Positions 7,116 to 16,441 of a DNA stretch of 64,000 nt are shown here, in pieces (position 1 is the stretch's first letter; every line of letters begins with the position of its first letter). Below the pieces are notes generated by a model, which saw only the letters and a program-made list of their open reading frames with translations, had not been told where the DNA came from and searched no databases. Both the position numbers and the translations under genes were made by a program. The stretch is taken from the NCBI GenBank assembly GCA_026936335.1, contig JAPMXV010000057.1:299437-363436 (forward strand), given 5' to 3'. This DNA comes from Mantamonas sphyraenae STR306 (taxonomy: Eukaryota; Protista; CRuMs).

Positions 7116-7270
7116 CAGCAATGGTTGGCGGAATTGACGCGGGGAAATTCTGCAGAACGTGGAGTGTGCGTGCGCAAGCAACACAATGATGCACACAAAG
7201 CTTTACATCATGTACAATAGAACTCGTCGTCGGAACGAAAGGATGGCACACGATGCGTTTATGAAACTCT

Positions 7271-9119
7271 TTACATCATGTAGAACTCGTCGTCGGAGCT
7301 GTCCGAGCTGAACAGATCGTCGTCGGAGCTGCCAACACCAGCGGGGGCGGCGCCACCGCGCAGGTTGCCGATCAGACCACGCACGCCACCGATCAGGCCA
7401 CGGGCGTCGCCAAACAGGCTGCGGCCCTGGTTGAACAGGTCGCGGGCAGCCGGGAACGAGTTGCGGATGCGCTCAAACAGGTTGCCGCCGCTGCTGCGGA
7501 AGTTGCGGATGAGGTTGCCCACACCCGAGAACAGACCGCGGCCACGGTTGAACAGGTCGCGACCCTGGCCGATGAGGCCGGTCACACCGTTGACAATGTT
7601 GCCCAGACGGCCGCTGCCGACAAAGCTGATAGCCTTGCGGAAGAAACCACCGATGCGGCGCAGGAAGCGGAACTGATCAAAGTCAGACACCTCCTCGTCG
7701 TCGGAGCTCGACTCGGAGTCGAACAGGTCGTCGTCGGAGCTGCCGACACCCTCGGGGGCGGGGGCGGCGCCACCACGGAAGTTGCCGATCAGACCACGCA
7801 CGCCACCGATCAGGCCACGGGCGTCACCAAACAGGCTGCGGCCCTGGTTGAACAGGTCACGGGCAGCCGGGAACGAGTTGCGGATGCGCTCAAACAGGTT
7901 GCCGCCGCTGCTGCGGAAGTTGCGGATGAGGTTGCCCACACCCGAGAACAGACCACGGCCACGGTTGAACAGGTCGCGACCCTGGCCGATGAGGCCGGTC
8001 ACACCGTTGACAATGTTGCCCAGACGGCCGCTGCTCACGAAGCCAACAGCCTTGCGCACGAAACCACCGATGCGGCGGAAAAATCCACGGCGACGGCGTC
8101 GGCGACGGCCAAAGTCAAAGTCCTCGAGCTCCTCCTCGCTGGAGCTGTCGTCGGAGCTGCCAACACCAGTGGTGATCAGCTGGCGAGCCAGGTTGCGGAT
8201 GCCACCTGCGCTGGACACCACGCCGGTGATGCGCTGCAGCAGCGAGCCGTCGCCGTTGCGGATGGCGTTCACCAGGTTGCGGCCGTTCTGGACCATACCG
8301 ATGATGCGCGAAGCCAGGCCAGCACCGGGCAGAGCCAGGTTCGAGGCAACCTGCAGGGCGATGCGGAAGTACGGGCTGGAAGTGATGCGCTGCACGTACG
8401 GAGCCACCTTCTGGTAGATCTTGCCCACAGTGCCAGCGGCCTTCTTCACGAAGCCACCCACCTTCTTGGCGACCCTGCGGCGACGGCGGCGTCGGCGACG
8501 GCCAAAGTGCGACACCCTCGGGGGCGGCGCCACCACGGAAGTTGCCGATCAGAACGCCACCCACGGCGACGGCGTCGGCGACGGGCGCCAAAGTCAAAGT
8601 CCTCGCGAGCTCCGGTCGTTGACTCGCTGCTCACGAAGCCAACAGCCTGGAGCTGCTCTCCTCGAGCTCCTCCTCCGGCTCTCCTCCTCCTCCGGGCTCA
8701 TGATCTCCTCCTCGAACTGCAATGCGTGCGTGCGAGCGTGCGTGTGAGTGTGAGTGTGAGCGTATTTTTTCGTGTGCGATTTTTTTGCGTGGCTCGCCTC
8801 GTTGCACGATCGTCGGCCCTTTCCCATCGAAGCGTCGGCCATCTGTGGCCAAACAATACCCAGCTCCCTTCCAAACATGAATGTGCACTACTGCACTTTA
8901 CTGCGCTGCCCATGCGACTGGTCACTGGCGCGCAGCAGCCGGTTGTGTGCGTGCGGGAGGGAGAAAAAACGAAAAAGCGCACAGAAAACGCGAAAAACAC
9001 ACCTCGCTGGCACTGGCATCAGTGCTCATCTCGCTCTCGGAGTTGTCGCTGTAGTCGCTGCTTGCGATAGCAAACACGCTCAGCGCAAGCAGGACCAGCA
9101 GAAACAGGCTTCTCTGCAT
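7271..9119 (-). CDS. Secreted multi-module cationic amphipathic polyprotein (putative membrane-lytic/antimicrobial peptide precursor); 2 exons, start of exon 2 scrambled in the assembly
   Basis: Exon 1 is 9119-9003 (MQRSLFLLVLLALSVFAIA signal peptide plus acidic propiece). The intron is 9002-8717 (GTGTGT...TTGCAG). Exon 2 starts FEEEIMSPEEEE. An intact frame from ~8510 to 7271 holds three Gly/Arg-rich modules separated by Ser/Asp/Glu spacers. Codon use is strongly biased (TTC/CGC/GGC). Confidence 0.7.
7315..8080. repeat. Near-identical tandem duplication, period 417 nt (139 aa), encoding modules 2 and 3 of the polyprotein
   Basis: gttgccgatcagaccacgcacgccaccgatcagg occurs at 7364 and 7781, and identity continues for about 300 nt with few substitutions. 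Confidence 0.95.
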
Positions 9120-9813: not shown

Positions 9814-12006
9814 CTAGTCGATCACTTCGACATGCGGCAGCTCTTCTTGCAGCACAATCTGCGTCGCATGGCTGCCGCGGATGAGCACACGCTGCAGAAA
9901 CGGCAGTGTCTCCAGCGCATGTGCGCACGCATTGCTCACCTCGGTGTTGTCCAGTGCGAGCGTCTCCAGCGCTTCCAGTGCTTGCAGATGATCCACACCG
10001 GAGTCACTCACATGTGTCCGCGACAGCCTCAGCTCGCTCAGGTGCGCCAGCCCACTCAGCTTTGCCAGTCCGTCATCGCTGATTGCCGTCCCTTCCAGGT
10101 CCAGCAACTCCAGCCGTTCCATGGAACCCACCACCGCCAAGCTTGCGTCGCTGATTCCTGTTTTCGCCAACGACAGCTGGCGCAGCATCGTCAGGTCGCC
10201 CAACTGTGTGATCCCTGCATCCGTCACGCGCACGAATCCTGTCAGATCGAGCTCGTCCAAGCACAACAAAGCGTTGAGGTGCCCCACACCCACGTCGTCG
10301 ATCTCCAGTCGACCAGGCAGCGTGATCGACATCAGAGTCTCTGCAAATGCCGCACAAAACCGCACCGCGCTGTTGTCGCACCGCGTATCGCGCAGGTTCA
10401 AGCTCACCAGAGGCAGCTTGCGCAGGTGGATCAGCCCTGCACTGGCCACACCACTCCCCGAGATGTCCAGGTAGCTCAGCTGCGCGCAGTTGCTCAGCAG
10501 TTGCAGATGTTTGCTTGCCAGGAAGCTGCACCCGGCCAGGCGCAGCTCTTCGATGTCTCGCAGTTCCGGCAGAAACTCAAATGTGCTCAGCGAGCACCTG
10601 GACACATCCAAACTCACCAACGTGGGCAAACACGCGAGCATCGCCACCCCTTCGTCGGTGATGCCTTTGTTGCCTGCCAAGCTCAGCATGCTGAGGTTTT
10701 CCATGTCACGGATGTGTTTGCACGCAGTGTTGGTGATGTGCACATTGCTCAGGTCCAAGAACGACAGCGAATGAAGCCCTGCCAGGTGTGCCACTCCCGT
10801 GTCTGTGATCGAGCTGCAGTTTGCCACGCTGATCCCGTTAAGATGGATATGATGTGCAATGGCCGCCAGAAACTCGTTGGCCACGGTCATGCACCCACTC
10901 ACATTCAGTTCGTTGAGTCCGCTGGTGCGAAACAGCTTCACCGTCGCCTTTGTCAACTTGCCCGCCGCCAGCAGCCGTTCCACGAGCAACCGCGCCACAT
11001 CGTCGTTGAGCCCATTCAATGTCGTCACTTTGTCGATGTGTGACACGAACCAGCGCATGCAAAGCTCTTGCAGCGGCAGCACCAGCGCACTTTCCCCCGG
11101 TGCCTTGCCCTTGCCCTTGCTCTGCTTTGAACTCTGCTTTTCGTTTTGCATGCGGTCAAGCACGTGGCTGGGAATGCGGTCCCCTCCATCGCCAGCATCC
11201 AATCCTTGGTCCACGACCTCCACGGCGTGGATCACTCCCTCGCCAGAGTGTGCCTGTTCCTGCGCGGCACCGTTCTCGCGGAGCACCAGCGTGGCGCTCG
11301 GCACCAGTCCTGCCTGCTGCAATGAAGTCACCCCCAAAACTGCAGGTGCAAACTCTTGCCTCGGGAACGGGGTCATGAACCCGCACGTGGCCTCTGCGCT
11401 CGCGTCCACTTCCCCAGAAGCAACCAGCGCGCTCAACACTGTTGCCAGGTTGTCATCGGCTTCAAAGGTGCCTTTGAAAGTGCCTCCCGACGGCAATCGC
11501 ACCATCAACGCACAGCTTGTCTCCGCCTGCTCCCGTGCTCTCTCGACAGCCGTGGACTGCGTGGTTGATGTTGTGGTTGTTTGCTCCCCTGCACTGCTGG
11601 CGCTTTGTCCCTCCTCCACCCGAGTCCTCTTCAGTTCGGCTCTGTCTTTCCGTGCCTGCTTGTCCGCTTCGATCTCTCGCTTGATCCTCAGCCGGTCTTG
11701 GGCGTCTGCGCGTTTGCGCTCGGCGATCTCCAGCGCCCGCTTTTCCCGCTTCACCCGCTCCTTCTCCTCACGCTCTTTGCGCTTCTCCTCCTGCTTTCGT
11801 GCCCACTCTTCGTCGTGCAGACCGACCAGCGATTTGTCGCCCGTGACCCCGCTCACATTCTGCACCTGACCGTGCAGATAGTCGATCGCTCCCAGAATCC
11901 CGCTGGCTGACCGTATGCTGTATCGAGCAGCCTCGTTTGCCCGATCAAAATCGTACCCAAGATCCAACAACTTGGTCAGGATGGAATCAAGGTCAAGCTC
12001 GCTCAT
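9814..12006 (-). CDS. UBA - coiled coil - UBX - LRR protein (p97/Cdc48 adaptor-like)
   Basis: UBA-like LTKLLDLGYDFDRANEA; UBX VRLPSG...F...TPFPRQEF...LQQAGLVPSATLVL; then about 14 FBXL/AMN1-type LRRs. Confidence 0.85.
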   Translation of the reverse strand: MSELDLDSILTKLLDLGYDFDRANEAARYSIRSASGILGAIDYLHGQVQNVSGVTGDKSLVGLHDEEWARKQEEKRKEREEKERVKREKRALEIAERKRADAQDRLRIKREIEADKQARKDRAELKRTRVEEGQSASSAGEQTTTTSTTQSTAVERAREQAETSCALMVRLPSGGTFKGTFEADDNLATVLSALVASGEVDASAEATCGFMTPFPRQEFAPAVLGVTSLQQAGLVPSATLVLRENGAAQEQAHSGEGVIHAVEVVDQGLDAGDGGDRIPSHVLDRMQNEKQSSKQSKGKGKAPGESALVLPLQELCMRWFVSHIDKVTTLNGLNDDVARLLVERLLAAGKLTKATVKLFRTSGLNELNVSGCMTVANEFLAAIAHHIHLNGISVANCSSITDTGVAHLAGLHSLSFLDLSNVHITNTACKHIRDMENLSMLSLAGNKGITDEGVAMLACLPTLVSLDVSRCSLSTFEFLPELRDIEELRLAGCSFLASKHLQLLSNCAQLSYLDISGSGVASAGLIHLRKLPLVSLNLRDTRCDNSAVRFCAAFAETLMSITLPGRLEIDDVGVGHLNALLCLDELDLTGFVRVTDAGITQLGDLTMLRQLSLAKTGISDASLAVVGSMERLELLDLEGTAISDDGLAKLSGLAHLSELRLSRTHVSDSGVDHLQALEALETLALDNTEVSNACAHALETLPFLQRVLIRGSHATQIVLQEELPHVEVID

Positions 12007-15000
12007 TTTCTTGCGTAAAATCGCGCGCAATCGTCCCCAACCACTCACCCATCATCCCCTCGCTCAACATACGCTCGCGCGCATATGCCAACCATTGGTT
12101 GCTCTCGCGGAAGCGCATTTTCACCTCTTGCATCATCGTGACGAGCTCCAGCGACACCGAGTGGAACACGTCTGCGTCCGGCGGGGACTCTTTGCCAAAC
12201 CCGCTCACCCGAGCCACTATGTGCTCGCGTGACACAAAGTCCACGTTGATTTCCTTGTCAGCACCTTGACGGATGAACATGTCCACAATGTTTGCAGCCA
12301 GCTTGACACATGCTTGCAATTGCTCGTCTCGTTCGGCGCCGGGCTCCAACGCCTCCACTTCTTTCACGGCCTCCCGGTACTGCTGCATCATCAGGTAACC
12401 CAACAGATTCTCTTCACTGTACTCCATGCGGCAATGCTCCTCAAAGAAGCTGCTGTACAGCCTGTTGTTCAGCATGTCCACAAACGATTCGTGCTCGAGT
12501 TGCGCGCTTGCGGCCCGCTGCTCCTGCGCCCACTGCATCGCCCAAATGCACAGAGGGCGCATGTACGCGATGGATCGGTAGTTGCCGTTGGTATCCCACG
12601 CCTCTGGGGTTTGAAACCAGTAACCCAGGCGCCTGTATACGCTGTCAACAAGTCCGCCCGACGTTTGCCACGCTTCACTCCACAGGCCCTCCTGCATCAT
12701 GCACGCCGCCACGCCGTACGTTGTGCCTGTCCACACCTCGCACGACTGCAACGACGTCATGTCCACCTTTCCGTTTGGACGCATGCCGTTGACGGCGCCC
12801 ATGCAGCCGTTTTCAAAGCCCATCACGTTGTTTGCAAACACCATCTCCAATGCACGCACGGCGCGGTCACGCGGCACGATGCTCGGCAGGCCACACGCAC
12901 CGGCGTACCACTGTCCTGCCAGCTGGTCTGCCATGATGCTGTTATGGTGAGCCTGTTCGCTGCTGTCGTACAAGTAGTAGTGACCGTTCCACAGCGCGGA
13001 TTCGTACCGAGCCGACGCCGACGAAAACACTCCCGCCCAGAACGTCGCGTCCTTCTTTTTGCCCAGTCTCTTGCTTATCCACTCCACAGCTCGAATCGCT
13101 GCCAGCCAAAGACCACCGCTGTAGGCACTGGGTCCCTCCACCGTCCAAGCGTCGTACGTCTGATCAGGGAATCCATCGTTCTCGATCATGCCATCGTTGT
13201 CTCTGTCAAATTGCAGCATATACTTCATCACCTCGCGGATGACGTCCCACATTTCCTGCAGGAACAACAGGTCATTTGTCGCCACGTAGTCGCGAAACAC
13301 CTGCAGCACAAACTTGCAGTTCAGATCCTTCCAGTGGTTCACGTTGTGGATGTTGTAGATGTTGACACTCTGCCACGGGTGTTCGCTCGGTCCGCCCAGA
13401 TCATGTGGGACAGCGCCACGCAGCTTGCGTTCTCCTTCCTCACCGTCGCCCAAGAACTTGCGCCACTCGCTGTCTTCCATCAGCGTTGCCACAGCCACGG
13501 CTCGCTGCAGATTCAGCTCCAGTTTCGGCCACAGCATCAGCAAAGCGTAGCTTGCGTAGAAATGCACGTCGTACGTATTGTACATCAGATATTCCAATCC
13601 TTCCAGGTACACGAATTGCCCCACATCGGTCTCGTCCTCATCCGCACCACTGCTCCCCACACGCGACGTTCCACGACCGCCTCGTGTGCCCAGATCACTC
13701 TGCATCTGCGACTGTGCGTCCCCATGTGCCTTGGCGCCGCTGTGCTTTCCTTGTTGCTCTTCCTCCTCGTCCAGTTCAAACACGTGCACTTCGTCGTCCT
13801 CCTGATCTTCCTCGATTTCCCTCCCCTGTTGCTCCGGCTCCTCCGGCTCCTCCTGTTCCTCTTGTTCCTCTTGTTCCTGCTCCTCTTCGGTTTGCAAGAG
13901 GCTCTCTTCACCATGGCGTTCGTCCCATGCATCTGCATCTCTTTGTCGGCTGTACACAGTGTGTGGGTTAAGGTCCAGGACGTGTGCATGCTCGAGCTCC
14001 ACCTGATCCTCGTTGATCCGCTTCAGTTGGAACTTGCGCTCCTGGTCCGTCTCGTTGTCGTACATGACACACGCGTACAGCTTGCCGACGTCAAGATCAG
14101 CCAAAGAGAAGATCACCTTGCCTGCTTTGGCCTCCTCGTCATTCTGATCCTCATCCACACTCATGCAACTCACCATGATGCCCAACTCGGCCACTTTTCG
14201 AGCATCTGTCAAATAACCCATCACAATGATGACGTTTTCTGTGTGTTGCTTCATGGCATGGGTCATGCGCGTGACTCCCTGCATGCCGTGCTTGCTCATT
14301 TCGTCAAACCAGACGTCCAGTACTTTTCGTCTCGCCTCTTCGTCCACAGCGTGCGCTCTCACCGCATCTTCCACCACAGAAGAGTCTGTCCACACAGCAC
14401 CGCCTGCAGTCAGGTAGTACAGCTCGTTGAAGAGCGCCATGTAGTACCAGTCTGGCGCTCCGGGCGTTCGAGCCACCAGACCGCTCTGCCAGCGTGCAAT
14501 GGTGGTCCTCCACTCGTCGTAGCTGCGCAACGCATCCACGGCAATGTCGTATGCAGCCGTTCCCTCGCGGCCGTAGAACTGCGTGTAGCGCCGGAAGCAC
14601 GCGTTGTCGCCGTGTCCGAAACGCACAAGCGGCATGTCCCACGACAGCGCAAACACGATCTTTCGTTTGCTGTTTGGTGCCATGCGTACCTTGACTGCCA
14701 CCGCACCTCCCAAGGTTTCGTTTGCGTCTGCCACACTCAGCTTGCTGTCATCCTTGGCCTCCCACTTGCTCGTAGAGCGAGGCAAGCCCGACGCGGACGA
14801 GGAGGAGGAGGATGCCGCATCTGCTGTGGATGACGAAGAAGACAACGTGCTGTTGCTTGTCCCTGTGTTCTGACGGCCTATTTTGCGGCCGCCTCCGATT
14901 TTAGGCCTGACAACCGCCTTGTCGCCCGATCCGACGTATTCGTAGGGCAGGACGCCGTCGTCACGAAATGGGTTCCACACATTGGCCCCATTGCCGTTTG

Positions 15001-16441
15001 CGTTGAACCCCGTGGTGTAGGAGATGGTGACGTCGTCGCGCTTCTGTGTGAGGAGGCAGTAGGTCAGCGGATCCTCGTAGTCCGGGGTGTCTGCAAGGCC
15101 GGATGGGTATGTGTAGTTGTGACGCAGCTCGAGGCCGACGTAGGAGCCCTGTTCGTGTGTGCCTGTGCCTGTGCGGCCGTTGGAGCCGAGGGCGTCGGCG
15201 TCGCTAAGGACACGTGGTCGCTTGCGTGCACGCGAGTCGCTGCCATGGACAAGGTGGTTGGAGTGACCTCCAGAAGCGTCTGCTTCTGCGTTGCCTGTGC
15301 CGTTGAGCATGCTAAACATGAGCGAGATGTCATAGGTTTCCTCCTGGCTGGTGTTTTCCAGGGTCCATTCAAAGACCACGACGGGATAGCTGCTCTCGCG
15401 GTAGTTGTGAGGAATAACGGGGGAAATCTGTTCGCAGGTCATGTGCACATCAAACGGGGTCGCACCCGAGGGAGCTGGGTTGCGGAAGGTGGTCCAGGAG
15501 CGTGGGAACAAGGCGTGGTATTCCGCCTCCTCGCAGTCCAGCTCCCAGTTCCATGCGCTGAGGGCGTTGCTCTGTCGGAAAAAGCGCCGTTTCTTGTCCG
15601 TGGCCTGGCTGTGCTGGCAGGTGGACAGAACTTGAGCTGTTTTGCGGCCGGCGACAAAGGGGCGGAGATCAGCCACGTTGCGCTCTTCTGCCGCCGAGCT
15701 GGACGAGGAGCGCATGCCAGAGTCCGCCTGCTGCTGGGCAGCCTGTGTGTGTGAGGTTGTGTAGACGCCTTTGTGGGTGGAGGAGGTCGACGCTTCCGGG
15801 GCACTTGCGCTGCGGGGCTGGCCACTGGGTTGTGAAAAGCTGGCGTGGCGCTTGAGATTGTTCTGCTTGCGTTCAGTGGCCTGGTGGCGCTCGGCTGCAC
15901 CCGGACGCACTGCCTGGATGAAAGCAGAGAACTGGTTTGCATACACGGGCGTGTCCTGGCACTTGCGTGTGTCCAGCTGGAAGCGGCGAAACTCGCCGCG
16001 ATAGCCTCGTGTGATGGACCCGCCACCCAGGCCACCCAAGGGCACGCCCTGATGGGCTGAAACGTTGAACGAGGAGAACGGATCCATATAAGGCTCACGT
16101 CCTTCGTTCTGGGTGCGCTTGACAAACTGTGCCATACGCATGCCCAGGCCAATGTACTGCATGCCCTCCACGACCCCCACGGAGAACTCTTTGACCTGTC
16201 GTGACAGCTCATCGTACAGAGAGCGCCTCCACGCATACGCTGGGATGCCCAATGCCTCCATGTGTGCCTTTCGCGCCTCCTCCTGCGTCTGTGGTTCCGT
16301 GTTGGGCGGCGACGTGGCGGACTCGGCAAACTCGGCAGCCGCTGCAAACTCGGCAGCCTCGGCAGCCTCCTCCTGCAGTTCTTGGTCATCCACAGGCTCG
16401 TCCGCGCGTTCTACGGCCTCATTGTCAGCTTGCAATGACAT
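11993..16441 (-). CDS. GBA2: Non-lysosomal glucosylceramidase (GH116) with C-terminal RGS domain
   Basis: GVPLGGLGGGSITRG, YHALFPRSWT, ALFNELYY, YLEGLEYLMYNTYDVHFYAS, WKDLNCKF, GFPDQTYDAW, EVWTGTTY and YMRPLCIWAMQ. The tail has EYSEENL and EINVD, which are RGS motifs. Confidence 0.93.
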   Translation of the reverse strand: MSLQADNEAVERADEPVDDQELQEEAAEAAEFAAAAEFAESATSPPNTEPQTQEEARKAHMEALGIPAYAWRRSLYDELSRQVKEFSVGVVEGMQYIGLGMRMAQFVKRTQNEGREPYMDPFSSFNVSAHQGVPLGGLGGGSITRGYRGEFRRFQLDTRKCQDTPVYANQFSAFIQAVRPGAAERHQATERKQNNLKRHASFSQPSGQPRSASAPEASTSSTHKGVYTTSHTQAAQQQADSGMRSSSSSAAEERNVADLRPFVAGRKTAQVLSTCQHSQATDKKRRFFRQSNALSAWNWELDCEEAEYHALFPRSWTTFRNPAPSGATPFDVHMTCEQISPVIPHNYRESSYPVVVFEWTLENTSQEETYDISLMFSMLNGTGNAEADASGGHSNHLVHGSDSRARKRPRVLSDADALGSNGRTGTGTHEQGSYVGLELRHNYTYPSGLADTPDYEDPLTYCLLTQKRDDVTISYTTGFNANGNGANVWNPFRDDGVLPYEYVGSGDKAVVRPKIGGGRKIGRQNTGTSNSTLSSSSSTADAASSSSSSASGLPRSTSKWEAKDDSKLSVADANETLGGAVAVKVRMAPNSKRKIVFALSWDMPLVRFGHGDNACFRRYTQFYGREGTAAYDIAVDALRSYDEWRTTIARWQSGLVARTPGAPDWYYMALFNELYYLTAGGAVWTDSSVVEDAVRAHAVDEEARRKVLDVWFDEMSKHGMQGVTRMTHAMKQHTENVIIVMGYLTDARKVAELGIMVSCMSVDEDQNDEEAKAGKVIFSLADLDVGKLYACVMYDNETDQERKFQLKRINEDQVELEHAHVLDLNPHTVYSRQRDADAWDERHGEESLLQTEEEQEQEEQEEQEEPEEPEQQGREIEEDQEDDEVHVFELDEEEEQQGKHSGAKAHGDAQSQMQSDLGTRGGRGTSRVGSSGADEDETDVGQFVYLEGLEYLMYNTYDVHFYASYALLMLWPKLELNLQRAVAVATLMEDSEWRKFLGDGEEGERKLRGAVPHDLGGPSEHPWQSVNIYNIHNVNHWKDLNCKFVLQVFRDYVATNDLLFLQEMWDVIREVMKYMLQFDRDNDGMIENDGFPDQTYDAWTVEGPSAYSGGLWLAAIRAVEWISKRLGKKKDATFWAGVFSSASARYESALWNGHYYLYDSSEQAHHNSIMADQLAGQWYAGACGLPSIVPRDRAVRALEMVFANNVMGFENGCMGAVNGMRPNGKVDMTSLQSCEVWTGTTYGVAACMMQEGLWSEAWQTSGGLVDSVYRRLGYWFQTPEAWDTNGNYRSIAYMRPLCIWAMQWAQEQRAASAQLEHESFVDMLNNRLYSSFFEEHCRMEYSEENLLGYLMMQQYREAVKEVEALEPGAERDEQLQACVKLAANIVDMFIRQGADKEINVDFVSREHIVARVSGFGKESPPDADVFHSVSLELVTMMQEVKMRFRESNQWLAYARERMLSEGMMGEWLGTIARDFTQENERA

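Follow-up and report, generated by a model that had tools for sequence, protein, structure and literature searches.

Clustered genes of Mantamonas sphyraenae predicted to encode secreted polyproteins of cationic amphipathic helices, with a putative cathepsin-read junction

The window analysed here, a stretch of 64,000 nucleotides from the Mantamonas sphyraenae genome, carries a gene that belongs to a cluster of three paralogs, each predicted to encode a secretory prepro-polyprotein with a signal peptide. Judged from its sequence, the product is probably a secreted precursor that is cut into long cationic, membrane-binding helices, and the family is real, restricted to the genus and apparently undescribed. 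The best reading is a granule or phagolysosome precursor of candidate helices that attack prey membranes (probability roughly 0.5), and bacterial killing by the modules is a plausible prediction.

M. sphyraenae is a marine gliding flagellate of the CRuMs group, and its congeners are bacterivores (PMC10492846). The genome was assembled with FALCON from PacBio RS II reads and polished with Racon and Pilon, giving 25.06 Mb in 78 contigs at 59% GC; the same study lists four read runs for the strain, one of which is RNA (PMC10492846). Neighbours of the gene in the window are ordinary eukaryotic genes, encoding an FAD/NAD(P) oxidoreductase, PIG-L, a UBX-LRR protein and a GBA2-RGS protein. The UBX-LRR gene (9814-12006, minus strand) has a long LRR region fused to a UBX domain, and the GBA2-RGS gene (11993-16441, minus strand) joins a GBA2 (GH116) glucosylceramidase to a C-terminal RGS domain in a single open frame, its last 14 nt shared with the beginning of the UBX-LRR gene. 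The parts of the polyprotein gene are the following.

9003..9119, minus strand: exon 1, 39 codons, with a signal peptide (about residues 1-19, judged by sequence) and an acidic Ser/Asp/Glu propiece
8717..9002, minus strand: phase-0 GT-AG intron of 286 nt, with GT at 9002 and AG ending at 8717, spanned by DNA contigs
8678..8716, minus strand: start of exon 2 (acidic head), identical to paralog A, with a 41-nt exact match that includes the AG
8478..8677, minus strand: stretch read as a mis-assembled patchwork of module and spacer fragments, about one collapsed module, with frameshifts and most of the apparent Arg9 (8500-8474)
8168..8473, minus strand: module 1, 103 aa, a divergent type found only in this copy, with unique contigs in the DNA runs and in run X3
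8108..8167, minus strand: acidic spacer 1, net charge -8, ending in the junction ELE-DF-DF-G (from sequence and charge count)
8087..8107, minus strand: Arg7, optional across the family on comparison among paralog modules
7751..8086, minus strand: module 2, 112 aa, 21% Gly, 17 K+R, heptad-amphipathic helices (from sequence and structure model)
7670..7750, minus strand: acidic spacer 2, net charge -11, ending in EVS-DF-DQ-F, without poly-Arg (from sequence and charge count)
7340..7669, minus strand: module 3, 110 aa, 96% identical to module 2 in DNA on sequence comparison
7271..7339, minus strand: acidic C-terminal tail, net charge -7, and TAA stop, common to all three paralogs

In the 3' flank, at 7197-7234, there is a short imperfect repeat of the last codons of the gene (84% match) that has no counterpart in the paralogs and represents either a local duplication or an assembly slip.

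The preliminary description of this region stands in part. The proposed exon 1 with a signal-like N-terminus and an acidic piece was borne out at 9119-9003 in phase 0, with the splice sites where they had been placed; the spacer ends given as DFDF and DFDQF were seen as DFDFG and DFDQF, and the balance of about 17 basic to 4 acidic residues in module 2 was counted as 17 K+R against 4-5 D+E. At least three Cys-free modules of about 115 aa had been proposed, and three are present, all Cys-free, at 103, 112 and 110 aa. Runs of 9 and 7 Arg had been placed ahead of modules 1 and 2; Arg7 was retained, and Arg9 has no read support. The claim that exon 1 splices into the modules of the window failed on the sequence as assembled, where the frame from 8716 meets a stop at 8596-8594 before the modules. 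Among the contigs listed, no RNA contig crossed the window splice, and in the RNA-like run X3 the depth is zero in the two bins that lie wholly within the intron. The splice was accepted because two intact paralogs share exon 1 and an open phase-0 frame. Cryptic in-frame splices near the broken stretch are possible on paper and are unused by the paralogs. Homology searches used the exons singly, the joined spliced model serving for the frame check only.

The intact paralogs A and B lie in tandem 5-9 kb to the left of the window (about C57:292386-294564 and 290355-292110). Both contain exon 1 as in the window copy, which differs from that of paralog A by 5 nt, together with phase-0 introns of 343 and 319 nt and an exon 2 with an open frame and 4 and 3 modules, respectively. 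The nine canonical modules are 0-7 nt apart over 249 nt, indicating concerted evolution or recent duplication. An orthologue in M. plastica has its own predicted signal peptide and a module identity of about 40%. Three internal Asp residues of the module at 7751-8086 (two in D-L-F and one in D-A-R) are kept in M. plastica despite this identity, and they may form salt bridges or mark secondary cut sites, which would yield pieces of about 38 aa.

Bases 8677-8484 of the window copy are collinear pieces of 11-44 nt from the first module and second head of paralog A, with large deletions between them. In runs X1, X2 and X4 the depth is zero at 8517-8617, a hole in contig depth that by itself proves nothing. 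Contigs of X1, X2 and X3 connect 8477 to a head of the 8067-8114 type, and a contig linking the exon-2 start to an in-frame spacer has a depth of 118.9 in X1 against about 55 for single-copy sequence, i.e., about twofold. These observations are most simply read as a repeat that collapsed in the consensus of noisy long reads; therefore, the 9-Arg head is probably artefactual, and the gene has at least three modules and probably at least four. It is unlikely that the window copy is instead a real pseudogene or broken allele, leaving paralogs A and B as the only functional copies. Such a reading would agree with the broken frame of the assembly and with the exon-1 signal of X3, which comes mostly from the variants of paralogs A and B, but it is opposed by the normal head joined to 8477 in three runs, by the twofold depth in X1, by unique module-1 contigs at about 8 times the neighbour depth in X3, and by the origin of the assembly in noisy PacBio RS II reads.

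Codon bias is far stronger than in the neighbouring genes (for example, 24 AAC and 0 AAT). In X3, contig depth reaches about 800 for the unique module-1 sequence and 15,206 and 11,763 for exon 1 of paralogs A and B, against 86-122 for the neighbours, figures that give a rough indication only, as the run is labelled 'DNA?' and contig depth tracks expression poorly. X3 was taken as RNA because its depth falls to zero in the intron bins, is close to zero in intergenic sequence and ranges over several orders of magnitude, and because the study lists one RNA run among four. Codon bias and RNA-like depth together indicate that expression is high, which backs the earlier suggestion of a highly expressed precursor.

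The modules are 103-112 aa long overall, Cys-free and heptad-amphipathic, with net charges of +13 to +19. A canonical module has 110-112 aa, 21% Gly, 17-18 K+R against 4-5 D+E and an x-R-x-L-F/I heptad. Hydrophobic residues recur with a period of 3.46 residues, and the amphipathicity of 0.306 lies at the top of the null range (shuffle mean 0.181, maximum 0.318). The hydrophobic moment is 0.4-0.6 over most of the module chain, and the N-terminal 18-mers of the modules have H of about 0.5, a hydrophobic moment of 0.57-0.65 and a charge of +4 to +5. The structure model consists of a disordered spacer and helices at residues 22-41, 46-83 and 88-128, with no tertiary fold (pLDDT 56, pTM 0.20). As modelled, the modules appear to be cationic, Cys-free, amphipathic helices of the kind that defines linear alpha-helical AMPs.

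The spacers carry net charges of -6 to -14, cancelling about half of the module charge, so that the net charge is +21 for the modules and spacers of the window, +27 for exon 2 of paralog A and -4 for paralog B. Thus, the alternation of acidic spacers and cationic amphipathic modules in the preliminary description is confirmed by composition, charge counts and hydrophobic period, and its separation of the gene from saposin-type protist lytic peptides agrees with the complete lack of Cys in the modules. The term 'self-neutralised' does not suit the window copy or paralog A; paralog B alone is near neutral.

The constant feature of the family is the junction [VIL]-x-(D/E/N-x)n-aromatic pair-Arg, in which [VIL]-x is followed by 1-4 D/E/N-x dipeptides, an aromatic pair (WG, FF, WF, FW or FI) and Arg. 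Poly-Arg is absent before five of the nine canonical modules (window module 3, paralog A module 4 and all those of paralog B) and from the M. plastica modules, and no module has a basic site at its C-terminus. A profile search of the genome with the junction found additional sites, and together with genes from other searches of the genome the motif is present in at least 15 further genes, including two lipases. At charge switches defined by charge alone, the motif was present at 22 of 34 against 4.5 expected after shuffling, and at 7 of 11 held-out loci, unused in defining the motif, against 1.8 expected; because the sites are paralogous and the held-out hits came from a related profile containing part of the motif, the p-values overstate independence. 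Of 21 junctions, 20 have a [VIL]xD anchor no more than 8 residues away (7 expected), and even spacing was seen in 16/16 (50% expected). In the D-x register there are no genuine premature Arg/Lys stops (a flag at L067 is an artefact), against six in the other register, and at 20 of 26 sites the first Arg or Lys beyond the acidic run falls at the start of a dipeptide; an 11-of-11 count from the same analysis was discarded, as the search pattern forces it.

According to previous studies, cathepsin C favours substrates with an acidic N-terminus and halts at Arg, Lys or Pro (PMC2063978), and papain-like endopeptidases prefer a hydrophobic P2 residue (PMC9712828); the cathepsin specificities are those of mammalian enzymes. 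The pattern of a cathepsin C-type propeptide, in-register acidic dipeptides ending at Arg or Lys, appears at the paralogous, non-independent sites of the family, and we infer that the junction suits an initial cut of the cathepsin-L type and subsequent trimming by cathepsin C. Two genes for cathepsin C and 22 matches to C1A proteases were found in the genome, and both cathepsin types are plausibly encoded. The genome also encodes a membrane-anchored kexin-type convertase, which could trim poly-Arg where present; this kexin/furin-type gene (L040:94-2394, plus strand) has a transmembrane segment and a cytosolic SH3 domain. A legumain-type cut after D/N was considered less likely, as the only C13 gene found is GPI8-like and an after-Asp register leads to premature stops under the cathepsin C rule. 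The C13 search, a lower bound, gave a single match, which we take to be the GPI8 transamidase, and legumain may be absent from the genome. No Asp/Glu-specific S46 dipeptidyl peptidase was found in the genome. Phosphorylation of spacer serines is unsupported, since there was no Fam20C match in the genome in a search whose control was uninformative.

The two lipases with the acidic/cationic cassette are class-3 enzymes (L017:2999-4252, minus strand, C57, ~136.7 kb; L064:1204-2154, minus strand, C32). Compared with a fungal lipase, the cassette adds about 76 residues in the loop just before the catalytic Asp, and a cut there would yield a lipase bearing a new cationic amphipathic arm, which suggests that the cassette docks on anionic membranes. 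A family of large proteins with open frames of 1,100-2,500 aa (L024, L025, L028, L029, L066 and L069) is laid out as the cassette, a long 11-mer cationic helix and a shared beta-rich domain of about 290 aa. This domain has long strands in its model (pLDDT 82); its structural matches are generic (best Z 9.8), so a pore-forming role is not claimed, and the feature-level look-alikes of these proteins are unnamed bacterial proteins. Locus L015 (C32:347500-356500) holds two long helical genes with the cassette, in inverted orientation and almost identical over their N-terminal halves; the copy on the minus strand has a frame break in the assembly. In L014:2759-4324 (plus strand), the cassette and module-1-like helices precede, in one protein, a Cys-rich domain of about 160 aa at the C-terminus, for which there was no Pfam match and no homologue.

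Module 1 is related to helices at the N-terminus of longer M. sphyraenae proteins encoded on contigs C5, C32, C42 and C51, with an SPxF..PG motif, and the heptads at the C-terminus of the C51 protein are similar to modules 2 and 3 (E 4e-9). Beyond Mantamonas, no relatives were found in a search of 5.8 billion proteins with paralog A exon 2, alignment A2 and the C42 relative, by HMMER over 1.84 billion representatives, or in scans of metagenome and viral contigs, all within the limits set by length and word filters; ESM Atlas, whose recognition was low, also gave none outside the genus. The modules had no matches in Pfam, NCBIfam, PDB sequence or Foldseek searches, no homologue of known function was found, and no publication describing the family was found in the literature searched. 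Two candidates were set aside: HMMER match P0002 is an unrelated simple repeat, and a phage tail tape-measure identity (phrog_58, E 4e-7) was judged compositional.

To our knowledge, it is poorly known how free-living flagellates kill and dissolve bacteria, and the described protist lytic proteins are mostly Cys-rich saposins of amoebae. Attack on prey membranes or solubilisation of their lipids is the best reading of the gene because the cassette occurs in lipases, the junction resembles a cathepsin-type signal and the host is bacterivorous. In the proposed mechanism, the acidic segments would hold the cationic helices in solution and partly shield them while in the ER and Golgi. Once the precursor is in an acidic compartment related to lysosomes, either a phagolysosome or a granule, an endopeptidase of the papain family would cut between x and D in [VIL]-x-D, and cathepsin C would then strip the D/E/N-x dipeptides and the aromatic pair up to Arg, poly-Arg acting as a stop signal that is retained on the product. 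The freed, Arg-capped helices would lie on the anionic membranes of prey bacteria, permeabilising or solubilising them, and lipases with the same cassette would act alongside. Several points count against prey attack: the modules are 3-5 times longer than typical helical AMPs, differences of only 0-7 nt among modules fit a bulk material no less than a weapon, helices once freed might be broken down by lysosomal proteases, and there is no homologue with known function.

The main alternative, tentative and less probable, is a processed structural cargo, in which the helices polymerise into an extrusome core, a surface coat or a gliding or adhesive trail. Very high apparent expression with near-identical tandem modules suits bulk material, and long heptad helices, the gliding of Mantamonas on surfaces and the presence of the cassette at the head of giant Arg-rich and beta-rich proteins are all consistent with it. 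There are precedents in the cathepsin-processed extrusome cargo of Tetrahymena mucocysts (PMC4142616) and in Ustilago Rep1, an amphipathic polyprotein with a surface role (PMC3133707). However, the Mantamonas genome paper makes no mention of extrusomes (PMC10492846), the cassette inside lipases points to membrane docking, and no sequence link to Grl or Rep1 was found.

The preliminary description had proposed basic convertase processing of the magainin and dermaseptin type, and this did not hold up. It is improbable that kexin or furin cuts after poly-Arg and internal RR/RK to release short antimicrobial peptides: the encoded convertase, a valid furin site (RRRR before G) in four of nine canonical modules and the AMP-like module N-termini would allow it, but poly-Arg is missing from the five modules named above, from M. 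plastica and from many cassette-bearing genes, modules are never closed by a basic site, and the conserved element is the acidic dipeptide run. Of similarly low probability is an uncleaved polyampholyte in which blocks of opposite charge would pair, inside one chain or across chains, to form a coacervate, serve as a store or package lipids or polyanions, with the junction as a structural cap or sorting signal, since the strict dipeptide parity is hard to explain without an exopeptidase and in lipases the cassette also functions when inserted within a loop, although paralog B is charge-balanced, an acidic tail follows the last module and cleavage is proposed from sequence.

If the prey-attack reading is extended to the other cassette-bearing genes, a granule or phagolysosome arsenal of more than 15 genes may exist, comprising Cys-free lytic helices, helix-armed lipases and large beta-rich proteins under one cathepsin-read acid-to-base switch, a proposal that we consider speculative. 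Such an arsenal would parallel neutrophil granules by convergence, in a lineage that branches near the base of Amorphea, and its helices would define a new class of linear, membrane-lytic proteins among free-living protists. If the cargo is structural, the proteins would be molecular markers of the Mantamonas extrusome, coat or gliding trail. An abundant, genus-restricted family with exact predicted cleavage points makes both the processing route and the activity directly testable, and the junction motif, marking a whole cargo class, offers a handle on an uncharacterised secretory compartment of CRuMs.

Compared with known systems, the order of signal peptide, acidic spacer and cationic amphipathic helix is that of frog skin prepropeptides (dermaseptin, phylloseptin and multi-copy magainin), as are the tandem copies and the AMP-like N-terminal 18-mers. 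Frog spacers end in KR/RR and yield peptides of 11-28 aa, often amidated (PMC6920962), whereas in Mantamonas the basic sites are optional, the predicted products are about 110 aa and there is no sequence homology. Among the defining features of dermaseptin and magainin precursors, a signal (judged by sequence) and an acidic spacer were found, and KR/RR before each peptide, a product of 11-35 aa with a C-terminal processing or amidation site, and homology in Pfam, NCBIfam or PDB were not.

Naegleriapore, Dictyostelium Apl and prosaposin are multi-module precursors cut to membrane-active units (PMC5890168), and SAPLIP polyproteins share with the Mantamonas gene this layout in a protist phagotroph. 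However, SAPLIPs need six Cys and a compact fold of 4-5 helices, whereas the Mantamonas modules have no Cys and extended predicted helices with the low pTM given above. Removal of N-terminal acidic dipeptides is known from granule proteins activated by cathepsin C, such as granzymes and neutrophil serine proteases (PMC2063978), and cnidarian neuropeptide precursors are cut at acidic residues, with non-basic N-terminal processing sites (PMC9545775). Unlike in these, the putative Mantamonas code is longer (anchor, 1-4 dipeptides, aromatic pair and Arg) and occurs on non-enzymatic helices as well as in lipases. Ustilago maydis Rep1, cut by Kex2 into amyloid peptides of 34-53 aa (PMC3133707), and Tetrahymena Grl are abundant secreted proproteins processed to self-assembling pieces, as the Mantamonas proteins may be; no homology to either was found. 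The likeness to phage tail tape-measure proteins lies in Gly-rich amphipathic helical repeats and a weak profile match, whereas the Mantamonas gene is eukaryotic and intron-containing, its product is predicted to be secreted, and no viral relatives were found. As read from its sequence, the gene has the layout of frog prepropeptides and naegleriapore precursors and is a member of neither group, joining a known precursor logic to what appears to be a new maturation signal.
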